Of a stretch of DNA of 64,000 nucleotides, positions 25,275 through 40,023 are shown piece by piece. The notes below the pieces were generated by a model. That model saw nothing but the letters and a program-made list of their open reading frames with translations. It was not told the origin of the DNA and did not search any database. The DNA is from Prasinococcaceae sp. CCMP 1430 (taxonomy: Eukaryota; Plantae; Prasinodermophyta): the NCBI GenBank assembly GCA_013416795.1, contig RQSC01000008.1, forward strand, positions 105,503-169,502. The letters run 5' to 3'. Each line of letters starts with the position of its first letter. The stretch's first letter is position 1. The translations under genes and the position numbers were made by a program.

Positions 25275-25979
25275 CACGTCGCCGCCGGAAGTGTCTGGAG
25301 GCGTGTGTATGTGTGTGTGTGTGTGTGTGGTGACGGTGGTGGTTTGGCAGATCGGAGGTAGGCGGAGACTTGAGAGCGGCTCGTCCCGCCCTGCCCCGGG
25401 CGGCACGGCGCTCGTGCGTCCGCGCGCGCGGCGACAGTTCGATCTGCCGCGGCCCGCGCGCGCTCCGTCCGCCGCGCGCCGCAGTCGTCGCCGCCGCAGC
25501 AGCCCCCCAGCCAGGGAAGGGGGAGGGATCTGATCGAAGAAGCCCCCTCCCCCCCCACTTCCTCCCACTCCGACGCGCGCGGCGCGCCCTGGCGAGCCCC
25601 AGGCGCGTGCGCCGTGTGGCGCGGCTGCAGCGCCTCCTCCGCGCGCGCGCCTCTGCGCGTTTCGTACGCGCCTCTGCGCGCACGCATCAACCCAAACCTT
25701 TCGAATGAAAAATGGATAAGGGTTTTATGTAAGTAGGGTATAGTATTTACGTCAATATGCATGCGCGGACAGGTGTCCGTTGGATGTCAGCCCGAGGGCC
25801 ATCAAACGAAACGCGGCGCGGTCGCGCGCTCGCTGCCAGCGGTCGCGCGAGCAGGGCCGCACGGGGCGGGGGGGTAAGGGCGCCACAGCGCGCGCGACGC
25901 GGCCCGCAGCGCGCGGCGGCGGCGGCGGCCCGCCCGCGCGTGAAATCTGTGCGCGCGTGCAGCGTCGCGCCCCAGGGCA

Positions 25980-28765
25980 ATGGGCGTGCAAGGCCTTTGG
26001 AAGTGGCTCGAAGCGCAGGGCGCTGCTGGGACCGTGAAGCCCGCGGACATCCCCGCGCGTCTCGACGGCGCAGCCGTTGCTATAGATGCCTCAACGTGGA
26101 TTCTTCAGGCGTTGACCTCGTCGCTCGGTATGCGCGCGCGTGCCGCAGGCGCGTGTGCTGTGCGTCCCCAGCCCTTTGGAACAGCTCGCTGCCCCGTCTA
26201 CATGCTGATGCTCCCACCACCGCGCGTCCTCAAACACTCGCAGCGGGTGCTGTTCGAGTGCCTCATGCCAAGCTGAGCTTCGATCGCCTGTGCACGCTGC
26301 TCGAGTATGGCGCCACGCCCGTCGTTGTGCTCGAGGGCAAAGCGCCCGAGGCCAAGTTCGCCACGCTACAGAAGCGCTACGGCGGCGTGGGTACCGGCAT
26401 CTGGCTCAAACGTGCGGGGCATGACATACGAGAGGTGGCAGAGGCCATGGGAGTGACCGTTGTGCAGGCACCCGGCGAGGCCGAGGCCGCTTGCGCGGCG
26501 CTCGCTGCCGGCGGCACGGTCGATGCGGTGCTGACCAACGACAGCGACGCGCTCTGCTTCGGCGCGACGTGCGTGTGGAAGGAGCTCCGGCTGGACCATC
26601 GTGGGGTGCTGGCGAAGTGCTCGCTCATCGAGTGCACATTGGACAGAGTCGATGAGATGTGCGGGTTTAGTCGCGAGGGCATTGCGCTCATGGCAGCGCT
26701 CAGCGGCGGAGATTACAACATTGGAGGCATCCAAGGGCTAGGCGTGGACTCAGCAGCCGAGATCGCGCGAACCGTCTGCGAGTGGGCGCACGGCCAGGAC
26801 CTGGAACGTCGGATGGAAGCCGCGGGAGGGGACCTCGTTGCTCTCATCGAGGCAGCAGTCGCGCGAGCCCCTGATACTAGCATTTTGTCTATCACGCACT
26901 GCACCAGCTGCCGAACGTGCGGCCACGGCACGACAGGCAAGGCCCTTCACGGAGCGCATGGTTGCGAGGAGTGCGGCACGCACCCGGTGTCGCGCGGAGG
27001 GAACGGCGCAGGTGGCTGTATTCCCATGCCCGAGGGGAGCACGTGCCCGTGCCCCTTCCACAGTCGTGCAGGCGAGCGCATGCTAGCGAAGGCTGCGCAG
27101 CGCATGAAACAATCCCCCGAGGCCCTCAAGCGCATGAAAGAGGCGCAAGACATTTGGCGGGGCCAAGGCTCGGCTGAAGCGGTGGCCGGGCTGCTGCCCA
27201 CGCGCCCGCGATGGCTCGGGCCAGACTTGGAGGAGCTCGAGCGCACGCTTGGCACGCGATTCGGCTGGAAGCAAGCGGCTGTGCGGCGCAAGCTCTTGCC
27301 TCTGGTGATTGAACATTCCCTCCGCATGGCCGTCTGGCAAAAGACGGCCGGTCCGAGTGAGCGGCGAGGTCGCTGTCCGACTCTGTTCGTGCCTATGCGT
27401 ATAAAGAAGGTGCAGGGACGGACTGCCGCGCAGCAGTGGCGCTACGTGGTCGAGTGGAAGGGGCTGCATGCAGCGAGCCAGCGGCAGACACCATGCAGCG
27501 ATGGGGACTTGACGTGGGAAGAAATCATGGATGCTGCCGACGCTCCGAGTCGCTGCGCTCGCATGTCGCTTATGAAAAAGGCGTATCCCCACCTCGTCGA
27601 GACCTTTGAGGAGGTGCACTGGCACCAGCAGGTGGCAGCCAGCAACAAAGGCCGCAAGAAGCAGAGCCTCGCCGAGGCGGCGAAGGAGAGTAAGCGAATC
27701 ACGGACTTCTTCCGCGGGCGCTCCGGTGCCAGACCTGATCCGACTGGTGGCGCGGCAAGTCCCGCGGTGTCTGAATCTTCTTCAGGCCACGTCGTGATCG
27801 TCTCCGAGAGCGACAGCGAAGTTGAGGACGCGATGGGCGCCTGCGGGGGCGCGCAAGGAGCATCCGCGCGAGGTAAGGGTGCGAGTGACAGCACGCGTAC
27901 TCGGGCTGTGGGCAAACGCATGCACACGCGGTCGAACGCGATGGAGCGCGCGAATCCAACTGCCGCTGGCATGGCCGCGGCCAACCTGCGCGCGATCACG
28001 GATGGCGCGGCCGATGGCGGCACCGGCGTCGATGATGCGCAAGTGAGGATGTCCACAGAGGGCACGGGCACGGAGATGCTGGGTGCGGGCGCCCTGTCGA
28101 CTCCACACCTTGCGCCCGCCAAGGGAGGCGTGTTGGACACGCCTGGCTCTGCGGGCAGCGACGGGTCCGCACATAGCGCCTCGAGCACCGACACTGCCGA
28201 GTTGCTCCTGTTCGGTCGACTCACGCCCGTGCGGCTTCGGTCGCCGCCTGCCCAAGAGAGAGCAGAAAACGCCAACACAGGGGCGCGCGACGCACGAGCT
28301 GGTGCCGGTGGTGCGGGCTTGCTTTCCACGCCAGGGGCGTTCCCCTCTGCCGCCCAAGCGCGCGGGTGCGTGGGCCATGAAACGGGCGCCAGCGACGACG
28401 TTCGCAGTGTGGAACCACCATCGCCGACCTCCGAGACATGCCAAGACCACAGCCAAGACGACGCTGCACGCGATGGCAGTGCGGTTGGTGCGCCTGTTCG
28501 GTCTCCTGCCCGCAAGACCCCCCCCGCTCGCCCGGACGATGGCAGCTCGCCGGCAAAGCTCGCGCGACGAGCGGCGGCCGGAGCAGGAAGCAGCGCGCGC
28601 AAGGCCCTTAGCTTGGACGAAGCCGGAGGGTCCGCAGTCGCTGCGCATGGCGACGAGCCTGTGGGGGAGACCCCGCGGCTCGATAGGAAGGAATGCGGGA
28701 AAGCCGCGCTCATTGACCTCACTGAGTCGCCCATAGACTTGACGGGAGCATCGCCGCTGGACTGA
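25980..28765 (+). CDS. GEN1: GEN1-like Holliday junction resolvase (XPG/Rad2 family)
   Basis: Exon 1 25980-26127 (MGVQGLW...IDAS), intron 26128-26243, exon 2 with APGEAEAACA, TNDSDALCFG, SGGDYNIGGIQGLG (H2TH), a Cys/His finger, a chromodomain-like RIKK...YVVEW segment and a long disordered tail. Confidence 0.9.
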
Positions 28766-28830: not shown

Positions 28831-31041
28831 TCACTCAATGCCGAGGTCTTGTGCGACCATCTTGGACGCGATTGGATGATAGCTCGGGCGCGCCTCCTCA
28901 AACGTTGCGCGCGCAGCGGCCTCGAAAGCGCCGCCGCGCCTCAGCAGCGACCTGTATGTAGGCCTGAGAAACTTCATCCTCCCAGCAGCCTTGACGAACG
29001 CGACAGCCATGGGGATGGCGCCCTCATCGCCTGCGCTCACGCGCAACCTGATCCATAGCAAGCGCACCTCGGAGTTCTTGCGCGCATCCAGCTCGTACGC
29101 GGCCTCGAGCGCCCGCACAGCGTCCAGCGAGAGCGCCTGCATGCCGCGCAGCGCGGCGAGCTCCTCCAGAAAGGCAATGAGCATGTCAGATGAGAAGCTC
29201 GCGATGTCGGCCGAAGAGAATTTGTCCGCGTACGCGCCAGCGCCGCCCATGCCCAGCGGGTCGGCAGTGTGCCACCGCACGGCGAGGTCGCGCGCGTCCG
29301 CGCGCCGGCTGCCATCGAACGTGTTCTCCACGGGCGGCAGCCCCGGGGCGTACAGCCATGCATCCCAGTCCACCCGCGCCGACGCCTCGGGAAAGGCCTC
29401 CGTGTAGGCGGCCTTGAACATGTCTGAGTCGACGGCTTCATATGCGTGCGACGCAAGCCAGCGCTTGAGGAAGGGCGCGAACGCAGCGTCTCCGCCCGCC
29501 TCGCCCTCGAGGTATACGAGGAACGAGAAGCCCTTTTCATACCTGCAGAATGCAAGAAAAATGTCAGCGCCGAGAGCTTCGAGGGCGCAAGCGTGAACAG
29601 GCGGCGCCGCGGAGCGCTACGCACGGAATTCGTGAGAAGGCGTCGTCGGGATCGTTTCCATCGCTGAGGTCAGGCACGAGGCGTGTGTAGTTGTGCTCGG
29701 CGCCGATGGTGGCAACCGTGGCCTTCAGGTCATCCCAACCCCCGAGCGCTTTGAAGTCGAACAACGACGGATCACCGCGCGCCCGCGCGAGTATCTTGCG
29801 CTCGAGGAAGACCGTGAAGCCCTCGTTGAGCCAGAAATTCTATTGCAGCTCGCGGCGACACACACACAAACGTCAGCGCGGTGCACAAATATCAATGTCT
29901 GATCTGGCGGGCACAGCGCTAAAAAGCGCACTCAGGCGGAGACGGTGCAAGCAAAGCGGCGAGCTGAAATGTGGCGTGCCGTTTGCTGTCCAGGGTCGCT
30001 TACACCACGTACCTCCCAGGAGCGGCACCCGACGAGGTTGCCGGTCCACGAGTGGGCCACCTCGTGCGCGACGACGTTGGACAGCGAGCGGTCCCCTGCG
30101 ATGAGCGTTGGTGTGACAAAGGTCAGCTGGGGATTTTCCATACCGCCGTACGGGAACGACGGCGGAAGCAGCAGCAGGTCGTAGCGACCCCACACGTAGG
30201 GCCCAGCAACGGCCTCGCCCGCGGCGAGGAAGTCCTCCGTCTCGGCGAATTCGTACGCCCCGGCATCGACCATCTCAGGCTCGCTCCACACGACCGACCG
30301 TGGACCGATCTCGCGGCGCTCGAGATTGCCCACGGCGAGCGCTGTGAGGTAGGAGGGAATGGGAACGCGCTGCTCGAAGGCGAACGCGCGCGCATCGCCC
30401 TTCACGCCGCCGCCCAGGCGCGCGCGCGCGAGCGCCTCCGCCGCCCGTGCCTCGCCGCTGCTGGCCTCAAGTGCCGTCGCTCCCATCACTGCCACGAGTG
30501 GCGGCGGGGCAAATACCACCGCGGAGAACGTCGACTTGATTGCAGGGCAGTCCTGGCACACAACGAGTGACCGCGCATGGATCGCCTGGCACTGCGAGAA
30601 TAGGTACGGGTGCTCGCCGCCGGCAGTCTGCGTGGGGGTGAGGAATTGCACGGCGCTACACGTGGTTGAGGTGGTGTAGCGCACACCCACCCGCTCGGCG
30701 CCGGCGGGCACGCTCACGGTGAGGAGCGCGCCCAGTGCGGGCGTGGGGTCCCCGAGCTCGTGCACCGCCGGGGCGACAGCTGCGCCAACGTCGTCCAGCA
30801 CGTCGACGGACGCCACGGCGAGCTCGCGCGTGTCAAGGTAGAGCGTCCGCTCGACAGATCCGTCGTCGCCGTCCGCCCGGGCAAGCGTGAGGGCGGCGTA
30901 GCCCTCGATGGTGCCGCTTCCGAAGTCCGGCGCTAGAGCGTACTCGGCGTGCGCGACCCGCAGCTCGAAGGCGCCGCTCGCCGCGGCGGATGCGAGGCTC
31001 GATGGGTCCACCAGCGGCGGCGGCGCCGCGGCCTGCGCCAT
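28831..31041 (-). CDS. LTA4H: Leukotriene A4 hydrolase-like M1 leucine aminopeptidase
   Basis: FSQCQAIHARS, YGGMENP, VAHEVAHSW (HEXXH), WLNEG, PYEKG, GRMKFLRP; two introns (~30010-29841 and ~29625-29543). Confidence 0.93.
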
Positions 31042-31357
31042 GGCCGCGCGGGGCGCAGCTCGGGCGCAGCGCGTGCGCAAGGCGCGCGAGGCGCACGCCG
31101 CGCGCGTCGCGCGCGTCGTGCGTGCCACGCGCATCGTGTGCCTCTGTCCCTCCCCTGGCGTGGGCGTGTGCAGCGCGCGTGCCGTGCGCCAAGACTTTTT
31201 TCTTTGCGCGTGTTTCGGCGGATGGAGGGGCTCCTGTTCGCGATGATGTTATTAAAGGTTGCGGCTAAGCTGCGAGCTACTCCGGCGATGGCGCCCCGGG
31301 CGGCGGCGGCACGCCCGCAGGAGGGACGCCCACGGGAGGGGCTCCAGGCGGCGGCAA

Positions 31358-34300
31358 CTACGGCGGCGGTGCGACGGCGGTGGTCGCTGCAATGCTCACC
31401 ACCTCGCCCGCGTTGGGCGCCGCCTGCAAGGCGGCCGTCTCAGCAAAGTCCTGCGCGACGACGTGGATGTTGTACGCAGTGCTCGCGCTGAGCCCCGTAA
31501 TGGTGTGCTCGTGCGGCACGGCCTCTGTGAGCTTGTACGGATGCGAGGTAAACGAGCCTGCCGTCACGGCGCTTGGCACGGTACCCTCGAGCACCGCACG
31601 CACCTCGGGCGCGGAGGAGGTGCTCGGCAGCACCGCGTAGTACACCTCGCCGGGCTCAGAGAGCTGCGTTGCGATCGTGACGGTGGTCTCGGTCACCTTG
31701 AGCGTGACCGCGAACGGCGCCGTCGTCTCCTTAGTGCTGGCGACGGCAGCAACGACGAAATTAGGAGCAGTCGAGACAATGGCGGGCGCAGGCACGCCGC
31801 TGGCAACGAGGCCCGGGAGCTCGTACTCAATCGTCGGCGGCACGTGCGGAAACCAGTCGTCGCACATGTTGCGGGGCGTGCACGCCCCTGGGCCGTATCT
31901 CTGGATAGCTAGACCGTACGTGGCCACGCTGCCTCCCGCGGTCGCCACAAGCGTCACCATTTGCGTGGGGTTGGAACCCGAGGGGACCTCCTGAAGCGAC
32001 TCGAGCATGATGGACGCGCTCGCACCGTCGCTGAGGTCCGAGCCCTCCCCGCCGTTCCAGTACATGGTGATGTCCACCTCGTCCGGGTAGAAGGCCACGA
32101 CGCTCACGTCGAGCTCAGTGACGAGGGCAGGGATGGCCACGGTGTAGTTCGCCGCGCCCGCCTGCGAATCGAAGCCGAAGTCGAGCGGTATGTCCGTGGC
32201 GGTGTCCGCTAGAGTGAGGGACAGCAGCGTCGCGTTGAGCGCGGCGCCGACGAACTCACGATCTACCACGAAGGTGTACGTCCCCGTCACCCGCGGGTCC
32301 TCCGCAGTCACCTCGAACACAAGCGTGTTGAGGCCGTACGTCAGGGGTAGGGACACGGTACTGGCAACCCCACCGGTGCCGCCGGCAGCGGTGCCGTTGA
32401 TGGTCACCCCGCCGGCATTCTCTTCGACCGTCAGAAAAGTGAAGTCAATGGTTGCCTCGTCGCCACCCACCGCTATGCGGTATTCGCGCACGTCCGCCTC
32501 GAATGGATTCGCATTGGAACACGTGCCGGAAGCACTCGGACCCGCGCCGCACATGAGTGTGCAAGCCGCGCTCGACGGCACGGCGCAGGTGACCGAGTAC
32601 AGCCGCGTGTCGTCCGACAGCGTCGTCACCAGCACTGCGGTCAGTTCATCCTGCACGAGATCCCCGCGGTCGGTCGCCACCACATACACAACCAGTTCAC
32701 TTCCGTGGTACTCTCCTGGCGTGCCGGTGTGTGGCTGACCGGCCAGGCCGAAGACGTCCGCCTGACGCGCGTCGCACGCGGCTGTCCGTCAGCGCGGGCA
32801 GTCTATGCGATATGATTCATCCCGCTTCCACCCCCCTCATCCCGCGGGCACTAGCTGAGCCGCGGGTGCGCGGGGGCGCGCGCACACCCGCACGCCGCCT
32901 GCAATGACAGCGCGCGCACGCGCGCCATCGGTAACTCACCTTGAAGAGCACTCCAGCGCTCACGACGTCGATCGATCCAGACTTGAAGAGCGCGGCACCT
33001 GTGGGTGCGGTTGCAGCCTTGACTTCACTCACCGTCGGGGCGGTGTCGCTCGACAGCAGGACTGCGTAGTGAACCGTCGCTGGTTCGTCGAGCTGCACCT
33101 CCACCTGCAAACTGTTCGAATACACCGACGCCACCGACGGGTAGCCCGGATCGAAAAGCGGCGCGCTGTTATCGGGCGCGACGACCGAGGTGAAGGCCGA
33201 CACAATCTGCGAATACTGTGAGGATGTTGGGGTCGCGGAGTCGGACGCGATGACGTAAATATCATACACGCCCTTCTCAGACAGGTCCGTCTCGAGACCG
33301 CTGAAGGAGGCGTAGTCGATTCCAGACGAATATCCGTCTACCTGCCCGTCGCCAGATGCCAGCGCGGCGGTGTCCGTGGCATCGTTACCAGCATACACCT
33401 GCGCGGGAGAGGGTTCGTCGCTGCCCGCGGCCAGAACCACGTACCACACGTACACGGACGAGCGCGACGCCTCAACACGCAGTCCGATGTCGCTGGAAGA
33501 GGTGAACGACGCTTTCCAAATGGTCGCGGGCAACGTGACAGCGCTGTCGATCCACACGCCGCCATGGCTAGAATCCTGCGCCGACAGGTATGTGTAGGCT
33601 GTGGTCTGACCGGGGCTCACCAGCGTGCTCACGACGGTGTCAGCGATGGGAACATCCACAGTTCCGCTCGCGAGAAGGTTGGCCTCCGCGTCGATGTCGG
33701 TCAATGTGACGGTCGTGGCGACCGAATACACGGCGTAATGAACCGTGCCGGGCTCCGACAGTGCCACGCGCAAATCGATGTCCGTCTCGGCGACGGGAGT
33801 TGTGTCGTCTGAGGTCGTGTAGCCCGTCGCCTTGAGCGTTCCATACTTCAGTGCGGTCAGAGTCGGCGGGGTGTTGTCCAGCGTGTACGTCTCGACCAGC
33901 GTCGGCTCGCCCTGCAGGTTACCGGAGGCGTCCTCGGCGACGAAGTAAACGTCATAGTCGGTGCGGTCGTCCAGAGCGGCGAGCGTTGTCTCCGCTACTG
34001 CAGAAAGCGCCGTGCCCACGGTGATGCTGCCTTCAGCGCCGTTCGCGGCACTCGGGGCGTTGCCGCTGCCATCCTCGCCAGCGGCGACATTGGCCGCGGT
34101 CGGTGCCGGCGCCGTACCCTTTTCCACGACGACGTAGTGCACGCTGCCCGGTTCGTCAAGGACAACTTCGAATGTAATGTCATCCCCAGCAGCTGCCCTG
34201 GCGGACACGCGAGGATAGCTTGTCGCGCCCACATCTGTGAACTGTGGCGCAACATTATCCAATGAGCTCGCGCTTTCCGACACCACCTTGCTGTTGCCCG

Positions 34301-37300
34301 ACGCGTCCTCGAGCACCGCGTGAATGTGGTAGGTCGTCCCGTGCACCAACCCCGTTACCGTGTGCGTCGTTGACGTGCTCGCGAGCACGCCGAAAGTCCC
34401 CGCGGACACCGCGGGGTCGCTGCTGGTATCATGGCCGAGCTTGATCTGAGCTGTTGTTGGCGCGGTGCTGCTCTCGGTGGCAACGTAGAAGATGGTGGCG
34501 GCCTCATCTAGTGTGACGTCGATGTCAATGGACGTGGGGGTAATGGTTCCTGTGGACCACACGCTCTCGACGGGCGGGGTCGCATCTGGCGCGTACCATT
34601 CGACCATGGTTGGCGTCGCCTGGATGTTGCCGTCGTCGTCCTCCGCAACGAAGAACAGGTCGTACCACGTGTGATCATGGATGAGGTCGCAACTGGAGCA
34701 GTCCGGCCCGGAAGTCTCGCAGCTTTGGTCATGCGTGACCACCGTCGACCACACGGTGGTGGCATCCGACACATCGACATTGCCGCACACGTAGGCATTC
34801 GTAGCGCCCGCCGAAGTGCCAGCCTTCACCTGCGCCGAGGTCGGGTTGCCGCCCTCGCCCTTCGGCACCAACATGAAGTACACCGTGCCTTGCTCGTCAA
34901 GTTGGGCTCCCATGGACGCGCTGACGACGCCTGATGAGCTGCCCTCGCCACTGACAGAAGTGACGCTCGGGTAGCCCGGCGCGAAGCTTGGCGGGGTGTT
35001 GTCCAGGGTGGTGAAGCTCTCTGTGATCCGATCCATGCGGAGATTGCTTGGGCTGGCTGAATCCTCGCAGGTCATCACAATGGTGTATGTTGTCTCAGAC
35101 ACCAATCCTTCGACGGTGATGGTCACCTCTGAGTTGGCGCTGATACCTGTCGTGGCCTTCGAGGGCACGTACTCCCCGCTGGCGCCGGTGAGAGCCCGCA
35201 CTTGAGCGGCGGTCGGGATGTCGGCGCCGTCAATGATGGCGACCACATACACCGAGCCCGCCTCGGTCAGCTCCACAGTGATGTCGACGCTCGTCGCCGT
35301 CTGCGAGTCCACCTCACCAGTCGTGAAAGTCGGCGGTGTCACATCGTGCGTCGTGGTCGTTTCTTTATAGCTGCTGCTACCTCGGTTTGGACCTGGGGAG
35401 GGCGCGTCGTCCTGCGGGCACGTTGGCGCAGTCACGCGTACGGGTCAGACGGCGTCAGTGGGCCGCGGGTGCGCCCGGAATCAAGGCGCGTGGTAGGCCA
35501 AGCGGCTGCGTGGGCGACCAGGGTTGGGCACGCGGGCGATTTGCGCACCTCGATTGCGAAGTAAACCGCGTAGTCAGTCTCCGAAGACAGCCCAGACAGC
35601 GTGCCGAAGAAATATTCCATGGCCCTGGGCACGTCGAAGCTGACCGAAGCATCGGCGGCCGCCCCAGAGGAGTCTAGGCCGGCGACGATTTGATCGATTG
35701 AAGGGTCCACCGCGGCGCCACCCGTGTCGTCCAATGCGACGACGTAAACCCTGCCGGGTTCGTCGAGCCCCATGATGGCGTCGATGGTTGTGCCGCCAGT
35801 CCTGAGGGCGGCCGAGCCTTGCGCACCGACGTACGGATCCGGCGCGGTCACGTCCGTCGTCGTTGCGTCACGTCGCGCAGCCCTCACTTGCAGATTCGGC
35901 GCCGAAACGTGCGCGTGGCCATCCGCCTGATCGCGGACGCGCAATGACAGCGCGCAGGCGCATCCGTCAGCGAGGTGGCTTCACCACAATCGCGCTCGCA
36001 TGCTGGCCGCGGGACTGGTGTGCGCAGGCTGGGCGCGGGCGGGGCCGTTGGGGCAGGGTGCGTGCGCAGAGACAGGCGCGGGCATGGTGACCGCAGCAGC
36101 CACAGCATACCTCGTCCTCAGCCGCGAAGAAGAACGCGTATGCTGTCTCCGAAGTGAGGCTCGTGATGGTCTCATCGACGTACTCGTCCTGCCCGTCCAC
36201 GGAGAAGCTGCCGCTGATGGAGATGCTGTTGCCCAAGCCGTCGGTGGCAGCCTTCACCTGCGCACCGGACGGGATATTCGCCGCCGTCAGGGACGCGATC
36301 GGGATCGCCACGAAGTATACGGTGCCAGCTTCGGTCGCGCTGACATTGTACGTGATGGTCGTGCCAGTGACCTCCTCCACCTCAGCATATGCCACCACAG
36401 ACGGCGTTGTGTCCGTGGTAGCGAATTCGAGCTTTGAGGGCGATGCCTGCAGGTTGAGCTCTCCCTCAGACGTGATATAGTTCGGCCGATCTTCGAGCGC
36501 AACGTAGAGGTCGTAGCTGAAGGCCTCGGTGAGCGAGCGGATCGTGAACGAGTCCTCTTGCCCCGACCATTCGCGCGTGACCGTGTCGTACGTAGCCGAG
36601 GTGGTCGGCGTTGTGATCAAGAAGCTGCCCGAGAAGAAGGTGCCGTCAGTGGGCAACTCCACGTCGCCATAGGCCACGCCGGCCTTGACCTGGGCCGACG
36701 TCGGAGCCGTCGAGTCACGGGGCACCGCGAGCACGTATGCCGTCGAGGCTTCGTTGGCAGACACAGTGATGACCGCATCATGCCCTCTAATATTGTCCAC
36801 TGACGACGCGATGGTGGTCGGTGGCGTGCCGTCGAGCGTGACCACGTCCACGCGTGCCACCGAGCCAATGTTGTTCGAGGCGTCGACAGCGACGAGCCAC
36901 ACCACGTGCGCCTGCTCGCCCAGCACCTGGGGGCAGTCAGTGCACTGCGAGCCGTCGGTGACGCTGTCATCGCAGCTCGAGTCCGATGAAGGGTCCGAAA
37001 CCGTGCCTTCGACAGTGAATGTGACAGGGGTGCTGGCGCTGGCGACGGCGAAATTCTCGCACATGTACTTTCCGAGAGGCGAGATGATGTCCGCAGCGCT
37101 CGGTTGGCTCTCCGAGATCGAGTTGGCAACATAGTACACAGTTGCGGGCTCGCTGAGTTCAACCAATAGTTGATAGCTCTCCGCCGTCACGCTGTCAACC
37201 ACCGGCGTGGCCACGACGCCTCCCAGTGCGGTGGTCGAGGTGAATACCGGAGCGGTGATATCCGCCGTCGTCTGTGACAGTTGTGAGGGGCTCGCCCCGA

Positions 37301-38753
37301 GATTGCCTGCGGCGTCTTGCGTGACGAAGTATACCGTGTAGCTTGTCTCGCTCTGCAGCCCCGTAAAGGTGTGCGACACGCCCGGGTCATTCGACGACTC
37401 GCACGAGAACGTCGCCATGCCGAGGTCGGGCGCATTGCCCGAATACCACTGAATGCCAGCCCTGAGCTGCGTTGACGTGGGGGCGCTCGCGCTGCCAGTC
37501 TGGAGCACCGCCGCGTACACCGTCGCGTCCTCATTGCAGTCGACCTCGAGCGTGATCGTGGTGCCTGCTGCGGGCGTCGCGAGATCGCCTGAAATCGTCG
37601 GAGGTGTCGAGTCAAGCGTCGTCACGGACAATGCAGGCGCCTGATTGCCCAGATTGGCTGACGCATCCTCGAGAACAACGTACACGTCGTACGCGGTCGA
37701 GTCAGTCAGCCCGCTGATCGTCGCCGTGTAGGTCACCTGCGCCGACGTAATGGTCACCGACTCGTGTGCTTCGGCTGCAGGGACGCTCGCCTTCACCTCT
37801 GCGTCGGTTGGCGCCGTGGCGGAGGCCGCGAGCACGAGCACGTACGCCGTGCCCGGCTCGGACGACTGCACGTCTACCTCGAAGCCCGCGCTGCCGATCG
37901 CCTGCACCGAAGGGAAGCCCGTGGGAAACGTCGGCGCCACATCGTCGACCGTCGTCAGCTCGCGCTTCGTGGGGGAGCTCTCCGTGCCACCGCCGTCAAC
38001 CAGCACGACGTACACGTCGTACGGTGTCGACCCGTCCAGCCCAGTGATGTCGTCCGTGTACTCTGTGTCTGCAGCGCTGAGAGTAATCGTGCCGTACGCC
38101 TCGGCCGTGATGCTGTCGCCGTCCGCATCGGTGTACACACCTGACGCGGCGACGGCCGTCGACACCATGGCGGCGGTCGGCACGTCCTCGCCGTTGGCGA
38201 GGACGACGTACTGCGCGCGGCAGGAGAACGCGCGGAGTAACAGAGCGCACCACCGAACGCGCGCGGGCACGACATGCGCGAATGCGCGATGGCGTCAGCG
38301 GTCGCGAGTCCGCAAGTGCGCACGCGGGCCGTCGTCGTGGGCGGCAAAGGTTTGGCAGGTTGGGATTCGAATGCGGTCGGGAAGTCGGGGCGGGGGGGGC
38401 ATGTGCAGCGTGCTCGCTCGCTGGAGTGGCCGCACTGCACGTGGGCGTGCGCACGCGGGCGCATGTGGACCAACTGCGAGACATGCGGCAACAGCTGGCG
38501 CGCGCGTCACACAGGCAAGGCGCCTCGCAGTCACCGCCTGCGTGAGCACCCGCACCTTGGCCGACCCAGCCTCATTCGCTTCCACCTCAAGTGTGAAACC
38601 GCTCGCTGTGATCGATGACAGTGACGGATAGCCCGCGGTGAACGTCTGCGTCTGCGCGAGCACGACTCGAGCGCTGCACCATGTGACGAGGAGCGCGCTG
38701 CACGCGAGCGCGGCCGCGGCCGCGCCCCTTGGCCCTGCGCGCTGGGCGCGCAT
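31358..38753 (-). CDS. Giant secreted protein (~2180 aa): ~15 FN3-like repeats plus 2 cadherin-like beta-sandwich domains
   Basis: Five exons (38753-38556, 38210-36111, 35926-35549, 35411-32940, 32761-31358), all joined by phase-0 GT-AG introns. Signal peptide, then repeats of the form DxTPPxF...V..SEPGTVYYV...APTxAQVKAG...GL..xTxYxVYxVAED. Confidence 0.85.
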
Positions 38754-39449: not shown

Positions 39450-40023
39450 NNNNNNNNNNNNNNNNNNNNNNNNNNNNNNNNNNNNNNNNNNNNNNNNNNN
39501 NNNNNNNNNNNNNNNNNNNNNNNNNNNNNNNNNNNNNNNNNNNNNNNNNNNNNNNNNNNNNNNNNNNNNNNNNNNNNNNNNNNNNNNNNNNNNNNNNNNN
39601 NNNNNNNNNNNNNNNNNNNNNNNNNNNNNNNNNNNNNNNNNNNNNNNNNNNNNNNNNNNNNNNNNNNNNNNNNNNNNNNNNNNNNNNNNNNNNNNNNNNN
39701 NNNNNNNNNNNNNNNNNNNNNNNNNNNNNNNNNNNNNNNNNNNNNNNNNNNNNNNNNNNNNNNNNNNNNNNNNNNNNNNNNNNNNNNNNNNNNNNNNNNN
39801 NNNNNNNNNNNNNNNNNNNNNNNNNNNNNNNNNNNNNNNNNNNNNNNNNNNNNNNNNNNNNNNNNNNNNNNNNNNNNNNNNNNNNNNNNNNNNNNNNNNN
39901 NNNNNNNNNNNNNNNNNNNNNNNNNNNNNNNNNNNNNNNNNNNNNNNNNNNNNNNNNNNNNNNNNNNNNNNNNNNNNNNNNNNNNNNNNNNNNNNNNNNN
40001 NNNNNNNNNNNNNNNNNNNNNNN
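39450..40023. other. Assembly gap (574 N)
   Basis: N run. Confidence 1.

Follow-up and report, generated by a model that had tools for sequence, protein, structure and literature searches.

What kind of gene lies behind the run of long, repeat-rich open reading frames (ORFs) at positions 31358-38753, and is it a bacterial import or a native part of an algal genome? The locus lies on the minus strand of a 64,000-nucleotide stretch, hereafter the window, of contig RQSC01000008.1 from Prasinococcaceae sp. CCMP 1430, and consists of four long ORFs and one short first ORF. An initial annotation, made from the letters alone, had joined them into one giant secreted protein of bacterial-style modules, possibly acquired horizontally. 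Our reading of the sequence is that a single five-exon gene fills 31358-38753 and encodes a modular extracellular protein that is secreted and non-catalytic; comparison with other sequences places that protein in a conserved green-algal family of fixed layout that has been neither named nor studied. Extracellular proteins that combine chains of fibronectin type III (FN3) domains with the cadherin-like (Cad-like) domain PF12733 were already known; what appears to be new is a conserved green-algal family with a fixed giant layout.

We examined in-frame splice sites at every ORF end and arrived at a single gene model, in which the joined exons make 2,183 codons (66 + 700 + 126 + 824 + 467 amino acids) with no internal stop. 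All four introns (345, 184, 137 and 178 nucleotides) are of phase 0, run from GT to AG and have a GC content of about 0.71, and the repeat unit is uninterrupted over each of the four splice junctions; at that of intron 1, EAGSAK runs into YVVLANGEDVPTAAMV. Because chance splice sites would not restore unbroken repeat units at each junction, the pieces most plausibly form one gene. The protein of roughly 2,180 residues, spliced from five exons with phase-0 GT-AG introns, that the initial annotation proposed is thus borne out, and the modules it listed (a signal peptide, about 14 tandem repeats, two cadherin-like segments and one terminal repeat) are all present where it had placed them.

Exon 1 (38556-38753; 66 residues) opens at an ATG at 38753, the earliest in its frame, and carries a signal-peptide-like segment of about 33 residues (38655-38753; Kyte-Doolittle 19-residue mean 1.79 at residues 14-33), followed by the first half of FN3-like repeat 1. 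Intron 1 (38211-38555; 345 nucleotides, GTGCGG..CAG) falls within repeat 1, the second half of which begins exon 2 (36111-38210; 700 residues), followed by repeats 2-5 and most of repeat 6. Two of the units in this exon recur below: repeat 2 (37614-37946; 111 residues), which was used for the fold model, and repeat 4 (36834-37262; 143 residues), which has a four-cysteine insert with a C..C motif. Beyond intron 2 (35927-36110; 184 nucleotides, GTATGC..CAG), exon 3 (35549-35926; 126 residues) completes repeat 6, takes in most of repeat 7 and is followed by intron 3 (35412-35548; 137 nucleotides, GTGCGC..CAG). Exon 4 (32940-35411; 824 residues) runs from the end of repeat 7 through repeats 8-13 to the first 78 residues of repeat 14, and includes repeat 9 (34587-35003; 139 residues), with the second four-cysteine C..C insert. 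Intron 4 (32762-32939; 178 nucleotides, GTGAGT..CAG) interrupts repeat 14, and exon 5 (31361-32761; 467 residues) contains the end of that repeat, a cysteine-containing linker, Cad-like 1 (32255-32521), Cad-like 2 with the YGPG/cysteine linker after it (31850-32254), and a disordered linker with the terminal FN3-like repeat 15 (31361-31849), which has no hydrophobic tail. The stop codon (31358-31360) stands directly after exon 5. Downstream on the minus strand, the ORF that comes next (31134-29932) belongs to a separate gene, of M1 aminopeptidase or leukotriene-A4-hydrolase (LTA4H)-like type, with its own ATG and a HEVAHSWTGN zinc-peptidase motif, and the FN3-repeat gene therefore ends at 31358. 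An extra exon past that point, using a donor-like GTGAGC site at 31399, was considered and ruled out, because the downstream ORF is unrelated and has its own start and because the orthologues stop at the same point in the repeat.

What are the modules? The chain comprises 17 β-sandwiches: 14 FN3-like domains, two cadherin-like domains (PF12733) and a last FN3-like domain. All database and fold searches were run with a single exon or a single repeat as query. A hidden Markov model (HMM), built from an alignment (A1) of the 13 repeats that lie whole within exons, counts 14 tandem repeats and one C-terminal copy; the 13 aligned repeats are 25-37% identical pairwise and share the consensus elements D.TPP, E.GTVY.V, PT.AQV.AG, T..GL...T.Y..Y.VAED and NL. 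In every exon the Pfam FN3 model PF00041 (fn3) stays below its gathering cut-off of 25 bits (the best exon reaches 22.1 bits, with no single stretch passing), and the A1 repeat profile matches fibronectin FN3 chains in the PDB with an E value of 1.3e-6. By these profile comparisons the repeat is a divergent FN3 relative beyond the reach of the PF00041 model, and no named family appears to cover it. An AlphaFold2 model of repeat 2, with a predicted local distance difference test (pLDDT) score of 93.7 and a predicted template modelling (TM) score of 0.86, contains seven strands and a short helix at the AQVKAG motif. Almost all of the top 50 Foldseek matches to it in the PDB are FN3 domains, with E values down to 1e-4, and the best are FN3 domains of Dscam, contactin and PTPRD (query-normalized TM score 0.6-0.73). 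As modelled, then, repeat 2 has FN3 topology, a seven-strand β-sandwich.

The cadherin-like pair is recognized directly by Pfam, PF12733 matching two stretches of exon 5 at 44.5 bits against a gathering cut-off of 24.2 (E 2.1e-11), with Cad-like 1 the best stretch and Cad-like 2 aligning with the second Cad domain of the orthologues. The structural model of exon 5, of moderate confidence overall (mean pLDDT 58.7), shows two all-β domains (pLDDT about 65-82 for Cad-like 1 and about 60 for Cad-like 2), a disordered linker and a good terminal FN3 domain (pLDDT 73-87). With this low-confidence model as query, the fold search returned only generic Ig/FN3 chains at a TM score of about 0.2, and looking up exon 5 in the ESM Atlas yielded no more than sub-threshold leads, which pointed to bacterial clusters of the Cad-like and InlB-repeat kinds. 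The classical cadherin domain PF00028 has no match in the exons, nor is there the transmembrane segment of a classical cadherin; an NCBIfam scan of all exons had no match, and a phmmer search of exons 4 and 5 against PDB sequences found nothing useful.

Nothing in the protein suggests an enzyme or an anchor. The Pfam and NCBIfam scans and the hydropathy profile uphold the earlier remark that transmembrane segment, glycosylphosphatidylinositol (GPI) tail and catalytic domain are all absent: no exon contains a transmembrane segment, a GPI-type tail or a catalytic Pfam or NCBIfam domain, and the sole hydrophobic stretch is the N-terminal signal-like segment. SLH domains and the C-terminal sorting domain of the type IX secretion system (T9SS) likewise have no Pfam or NCBIfam match in any exon. 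The composition is strikingly acidic, with 268 aspartate and glutamate residues against 61 lysines and arginines, and 47% of all residues are alanine, threonine, valine or serine. There are four N-glycosylation sequons and 19 cysteines, 8 of which sit in the two four-cysteine inserts of repeats 4 and 9.

The whole layout recurs in a transcript-derived protein of 2,435 residues from Nephroselmis pyriformis (MMETSP0034; EukProt EP00232_P024111; P0211). In BLASTP comparisons, residues 86-450 of exon 5 align with residues 2016-2422 of this protein, and residues 25-450 align with residues 2092-2531 of an MMETSP protein of 2,544 residues (P0082), each at E 5e-22. The order of elements is collinear in exon 5, P0211 and P0082: last tandem repeat, Cad, Cad, GPG linker and a terminal FN3 domain that ends the protein. 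Both relatives have two PF12733 stretches near the C-terminus. A search with the C-terminal module of the Nephroselmis protein returned 14 more clusters (P0228-P0241; 2,391-2,547 residues) from ENA and Logan, one of them on a 959-kb contig; all have PF12733 and are 39-48% identical to that module over 92-100% of its length. The same architecture is therefore found in the chlorophyte Nephroselmis pyriformis and at least 15 other clusters, the family being represented in many sequences from marine metagenomes and transcriptomes.

The correspondence extends to the number of repeats and the place of individual ones. The HMM counts 14+1 repeats in the window protein, P0211 and P0228, and one more in P0082 and P0235, since there one repeat is split by the HMM. 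In each of the five proteins examined (the window protein and four orthologues), four-cysteine inserts occur in the 4th and the 9th repeat. In a tree of repeats, the chlorophyte-type proteins cluster by repeat position, repeat 15 of the window protein joins the terminal repeats of the orthologues (Shimodaira-Hasegawa-like approximate likelihood ratio test support 84), and repeat 13 joins its own positional group weakly. The orthologues are likewise acidic and unanchored, and the complete ones have, as the window protein does, a signal peptide leading straight into repeat 1; P0211, P0082 and P0238-P0240 begin much as exon 1 does. Also shared are the two PF12733 domains between repeats 14 and 15, the YGPG linker after them and the collinearity of the C-terminal 420-430 residues.

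The window protein is nevertheless a divergent member. It is only about 28-29% identical to the others over the C-terminal module, whereas the chlorophyte-type members are 39-48% identical among themselves, and it is about 250 residues shorter. It lacks a third cysteine insert, in repeat 2, and a conserved cysteine-rich insertion in the Cad-like 2 domain of the chlorophyte-type orthologues (W-P-x-C-V-K-G-C ... C-S-x-A-N-P-E-C; alignment A5). Its gene has four introns, whereas several relatives are called as single ORFs. In P0231, P0233, P0235, P0230 and P0241 the called ORF opens at, or slightly ahead of, the 'YYVV' strand of repeat 1, which corresponds to the site of intron 1 in the window gene; this hints that the intron separating the signal-peptide exon may be common to these relatives.

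How far does the repeat itself extend beyond this family? A word search with exon 4 recovered the window's own ORF and about 20 distant proteins, including one with Reeler, DOMON and cytochrome b561 domains, a eukaryote-type combination, and several with T9SS tails. A HMMER search with the same exon recovered 1,104 representatives with E <= 1e-3, of which 72 had E <= 1e-30, most of the top matches being giant proteins. Those with names come from Nephroselmis pyriformis, Bicosoecida sp. CB-2014, two further MMETSP transcripts, Paenibacillus nanensis (an SLH protein) and Shiella aurantiaca (Cytophagales; an LTD protein); among 14 other top matches, three have REJ domains, two TSP1 and one a T9SS tail. 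In a scan of one genome per bacterial species, the repeat was present in Cytophagales, Cyclobacteriaceae, Flammeovirgaceae, Ekhidna, Roseivirgaceae, Chlorobiaceae and Niveispirillum, and the two best bacterial loci encode T9SS cargo with an EEP nuclease domain. The repeat subtype is thus, by these matches, common property of bacteria and many marine protists. With exon 5, the word search found the window's own ORF only, its relatives being far longer than the length range of that search, and a local phmmer search of the Cad pair against the fetched proteins also returned only that ORF; it was Pfam that revealed the domain in the relatives.

The best-scoring relative of exon 4 (P0064, 915 bits; on an 87-kb contig in ENA) is a protein of 3,967 residues with 32 very regular repeats of the FN3 subtype; its N-terminal end resembles a C-type lectin, and a Cad-like domain is absent. 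P0002 (843 residues) resembles a fragment of a P0064-like protein. For some of the bacterial relatives P0009, P0010, P0012, P0017 and P0080, precomputed Pfam columns list PF28268 and PF28587, accessions newer than the Pfam copy we used, which may already model the FN3-like subtype.

Comparison with the bacterial proteins separates what is shared from what is particular to the algal family. Cytophagales T9SS cargo (L001, L002), the Shiella aurantiaca protein WP_320003901.1 and the Paenibacillus nanensis protein WP_119600291.1 share the signature D.TPP, E.GT.YYV, APT.AQVKAG, T.Y.VY.VAED and NLQ, and there, too, the repeats form tandem arrays in secreted proteins. The bacterial proteins, however, carry sorting or anchoring modules (a T9SS C-terminal domain, SLH) and often an enzyme (EEP nuclease, amylase, GH18), all of which the window protein lacks; their repeats are few, or near-identical within one protein, and none has the 14+1/Cad-Cad layout. 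The view that both module types are known mainly from Bacteroidetes and Firmicutes therefore holds in part: they do occur there, in Cytophagales T9SS cargo, the Shiella LTD protein and the Paenibacillus SLH protein, but the repeat subtype is equally common in marine protist proteins. With fibronectin, Dscam, contactins and receptor tyrosine phosphatases the algal protein shares the domain fold and a beads-on-a-string extracellular design, but identity to these animal FN3-chain proteins is 15-20%, the algal repeats differ in an additional short helix at AQVKAG and in a D.TPP linker, and no orthology is implied.

The cadherin-like domain has a literature of its own. Anantharaman and Aravind (2010; PMC2824669), in their passages on PF12733, offer carbohydrate binding, argued from domain fusions, and lateral transfer as proposals, and already count chlorophyte algae among its few eukaryotic holders. 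The FN3 association and the extracellular setting described there match the window protein, in which both copies of the domain score above the cut-off, whereas a fixed giant architecture is not mentioned in those passages.

Where, then, did the gene come from, and might the evidence be read otherwise? That the model is mis-joined, with the four long ORFs being separate genes or a decayed repeat array, is extremely hard to credit: public ORF-based calls do split the locus (P0001, 865 residues; P0063, 466 residues), but at each junction a phase-0 GT..AG intron restores the repeat unit, the signal peptide is on exon 1 only, and the transcript-derived orthologues of 2,435 and 2,544 residues share the layout from end to end. 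A second alternative, close to the original suggestion of horizontal acquisition, takes the gene to be a ready-made FN3/Cad-like adhesin acquired recently from Bacteroidota or Firmicutes and then domesticated by added introns and a signal peptide. PF12733 is indeed mostly bacterial, and the same repeat subtype occurs in genomes of Cytophagales, Cyclobacteriaceae, Ekhidna, Niveispirillum and Chlorobiaceae and in Paenibacillus and Shiella proteins. Yet the bacterial matches are only about 30-37% identical per domain, a level that does not exceed the identity among the gene's own repeats, and their architectures differ (EEP nuclease with T9SS tail, SLH, LTD), whereas the 14+1/Cad-Cad layout with inserts in repeats 4 and 9 is present in Nephroselmis and at least 15 clusters and in no bacterial match. 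Codon usage is native: the GC content at third codon positions (GC3) is 0.75-0.82, against 0.72-0.83 in the neighbouring genes, and synonymous codon choice matches. In an unrooted and weakly resolved tree of eukaryotic and bacterial repeats, most bacterial repeats gather in a single compact region that does not enclose the algal repeats. We consider such a recent capture very unlikely. Horizontal acquisition, taken as a recent or lineage-specific event, finds no support in the sequences: the subtype also occurs in a bicosoecid and in proteins with REJ, TSP1 or DOMON-cytochrome b561 domains, the gene has four introns, and its closest full-architecture relatives are algal sequences or marine ones of eukaryote type. 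The initial annotation had itself named, as what would undo its proposal, homologues spread broadly and vertically among eukaryotes and having a known function; broad eukaryotic homologues there are, but no function is known for any member.

An ancient bacterial origin is another matter. The Cad-like domain, and perhaps the FN3 subtype, might have entered an early ancestor of green algae or protists and been inherited vertically since, a possibility we take seriously while thinking it doubtful. PF12733 is widespread in bacteria and patchy in eukaryotes, the ground on which lateral transfer is proposed in the passages on the domain in PMC2824669, and fusions of Cad-like and FN3 domains are common in bacteria; the direction of transfer, on the other hand, is unreadable from an unrooted and poorly supported domain tree, and the eukaryotic repeats are more diverse than the bacterial ones, which fits an old eukaryotic history or a reverse transfer equally well. 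This alternative concerns origin only and is compatible with the reading we favour. A different use for the same protein, as a rod resembling gamete or flagellar agglutinins that serves in mating or holds colonies together instead of forming part of the wall, seems to us unlikely. The long, rod-like modular build with discrete knobs is that of adhesins, the genome of Prasinoderma coloniale keeps flagellar and meiosis genes (PMC7455551), and the constancy of repeat number and of positional identity points to specific partners; against this, the protein has no membrane or wall anchor, and nothing in its sequence tells an agglutinin from a structural role.

The reading we favour, to which we would give a probability of about 0.6, is that of a native nuclear gene of a fixed-layout family, whose product serves the cell surface or wall as a structural or adhesive element. 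The comparisons indicate that the gene is native to the green alga, that it is neither a one-off nor a recent import, and that it probably predates the split between Prasinodermophyta and Chlorophyta. By sequence and models, its product enters the secretory pathway by way of the N-terminal signal peptide and has no membrane anchor. The FN3 chain may act as a semi-rigid spacer of fixed length, about 55-65 nm if each domain adds the customary 3.5-4 nm; close to the C-terminus, the Cad-like pair could hold the protein to a glycan of the cell covering; and the cysteine inserts of repeats 4 and 9 might be fixed docking points for partners. Most likely, on this analysis, the protein serves as a long glycan-binding scaffold of the surface or wall, the idea of glycan binding deriving from the bacterial fusion partners of the PF12733 domain as argued in the passages on it in PMC2824669. 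In P. coloniale, the wall is thick and of unknown chemistry, with no identified polymer pathway and no genes for cellulose, mannan, xylan or xyloglucan (PMC7455551); this unknown chemistry, together with the missing polysaccharide genes, makes a wall protein plausible. The base composition of the window is consistent with the 69.8% GC published for the P. coloniale genome (PMC7455551).

Several points weigh against this reading. No member of the family has been studied, and we infer both its location and its binding. The model of the Cad region is only moderately confident (mean pLDDT 58.7), only one orthologue, that of Nephroselmis, has a taxon name, and the tree leaves positional orthology of the window protein unsettled beyond repeats 4, 9 and 15 and the Cad pair. 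One member of the family comes from a scaly flagellate (Nephroselmis) and another from a walled coccoid, so that a role tied to one type of covering is unlikely and a more general one probable. A literature search turned up no relevant work on FN3 or cadherin-like proteins of prasinophyte scales or walls. A bolder form of the proposal would make this a core cell-covering protein of early-diverging green algae, inherited from near the base of Viridiplantae, in which a 14+1 FN3 rod with two docking knobs and a glycan-binding Cad pair spaces or tethers layers of wall or scales; it would help to explain how P. coloniale has a thick wall without known polysaccharide synthases, and we regard it as speculative and rather improbable in its entirety.

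Proteins of prasinophyte cell coverings are almost unknown, and the window protein offers a concrete candidate for work on the cell covering of early-diverging green algae: a large secreted protein, strongly conserved, with a fixed domain count and common to a walled coccoid and a scaly flagellate. It also corrects a story of recent bacterial capture in favour of a family that looks old and vertically inherited.

The surroundings of the gene do not extend it into a larger unit. The initial annotation had put the locus forward as the best candidate in the window for an undescribed system, a description that does not survive, as this is a single gene and the adjoining genes are unrelated to it. 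The stop codon of the FN3-repeat gene lies only about 220 bp from the ATG of the M1 aminopeptidase- or LTA4H-like neighbour, which occupies 28831-31134 on the minus strand; a second ORF (29421-28831) reads like the C-terminal domain of this neighbour, which is apparently interrupted by at least one intron. Farther along, at 25757-28765 on the plus strand, a 1,002-residue ORF with the signature of an XPG/FEN1-type nuclease (PGEAEA...DSD) and, after it, a long tail of low complexity may encode a GEN1-like resolvase. On the other side, a run of 574 N bases (39450-40023) begins about 700 bp upstream of the ATG and leaves part of the promoter and 5' region unsequenced; the stretch from this gap to the ATG is very GC-rich, with short repeats of the GCGGCGCTGC type. 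The window as a whole is high in GC (0.53-0.73 per 2 kb) and contains short N gaps.

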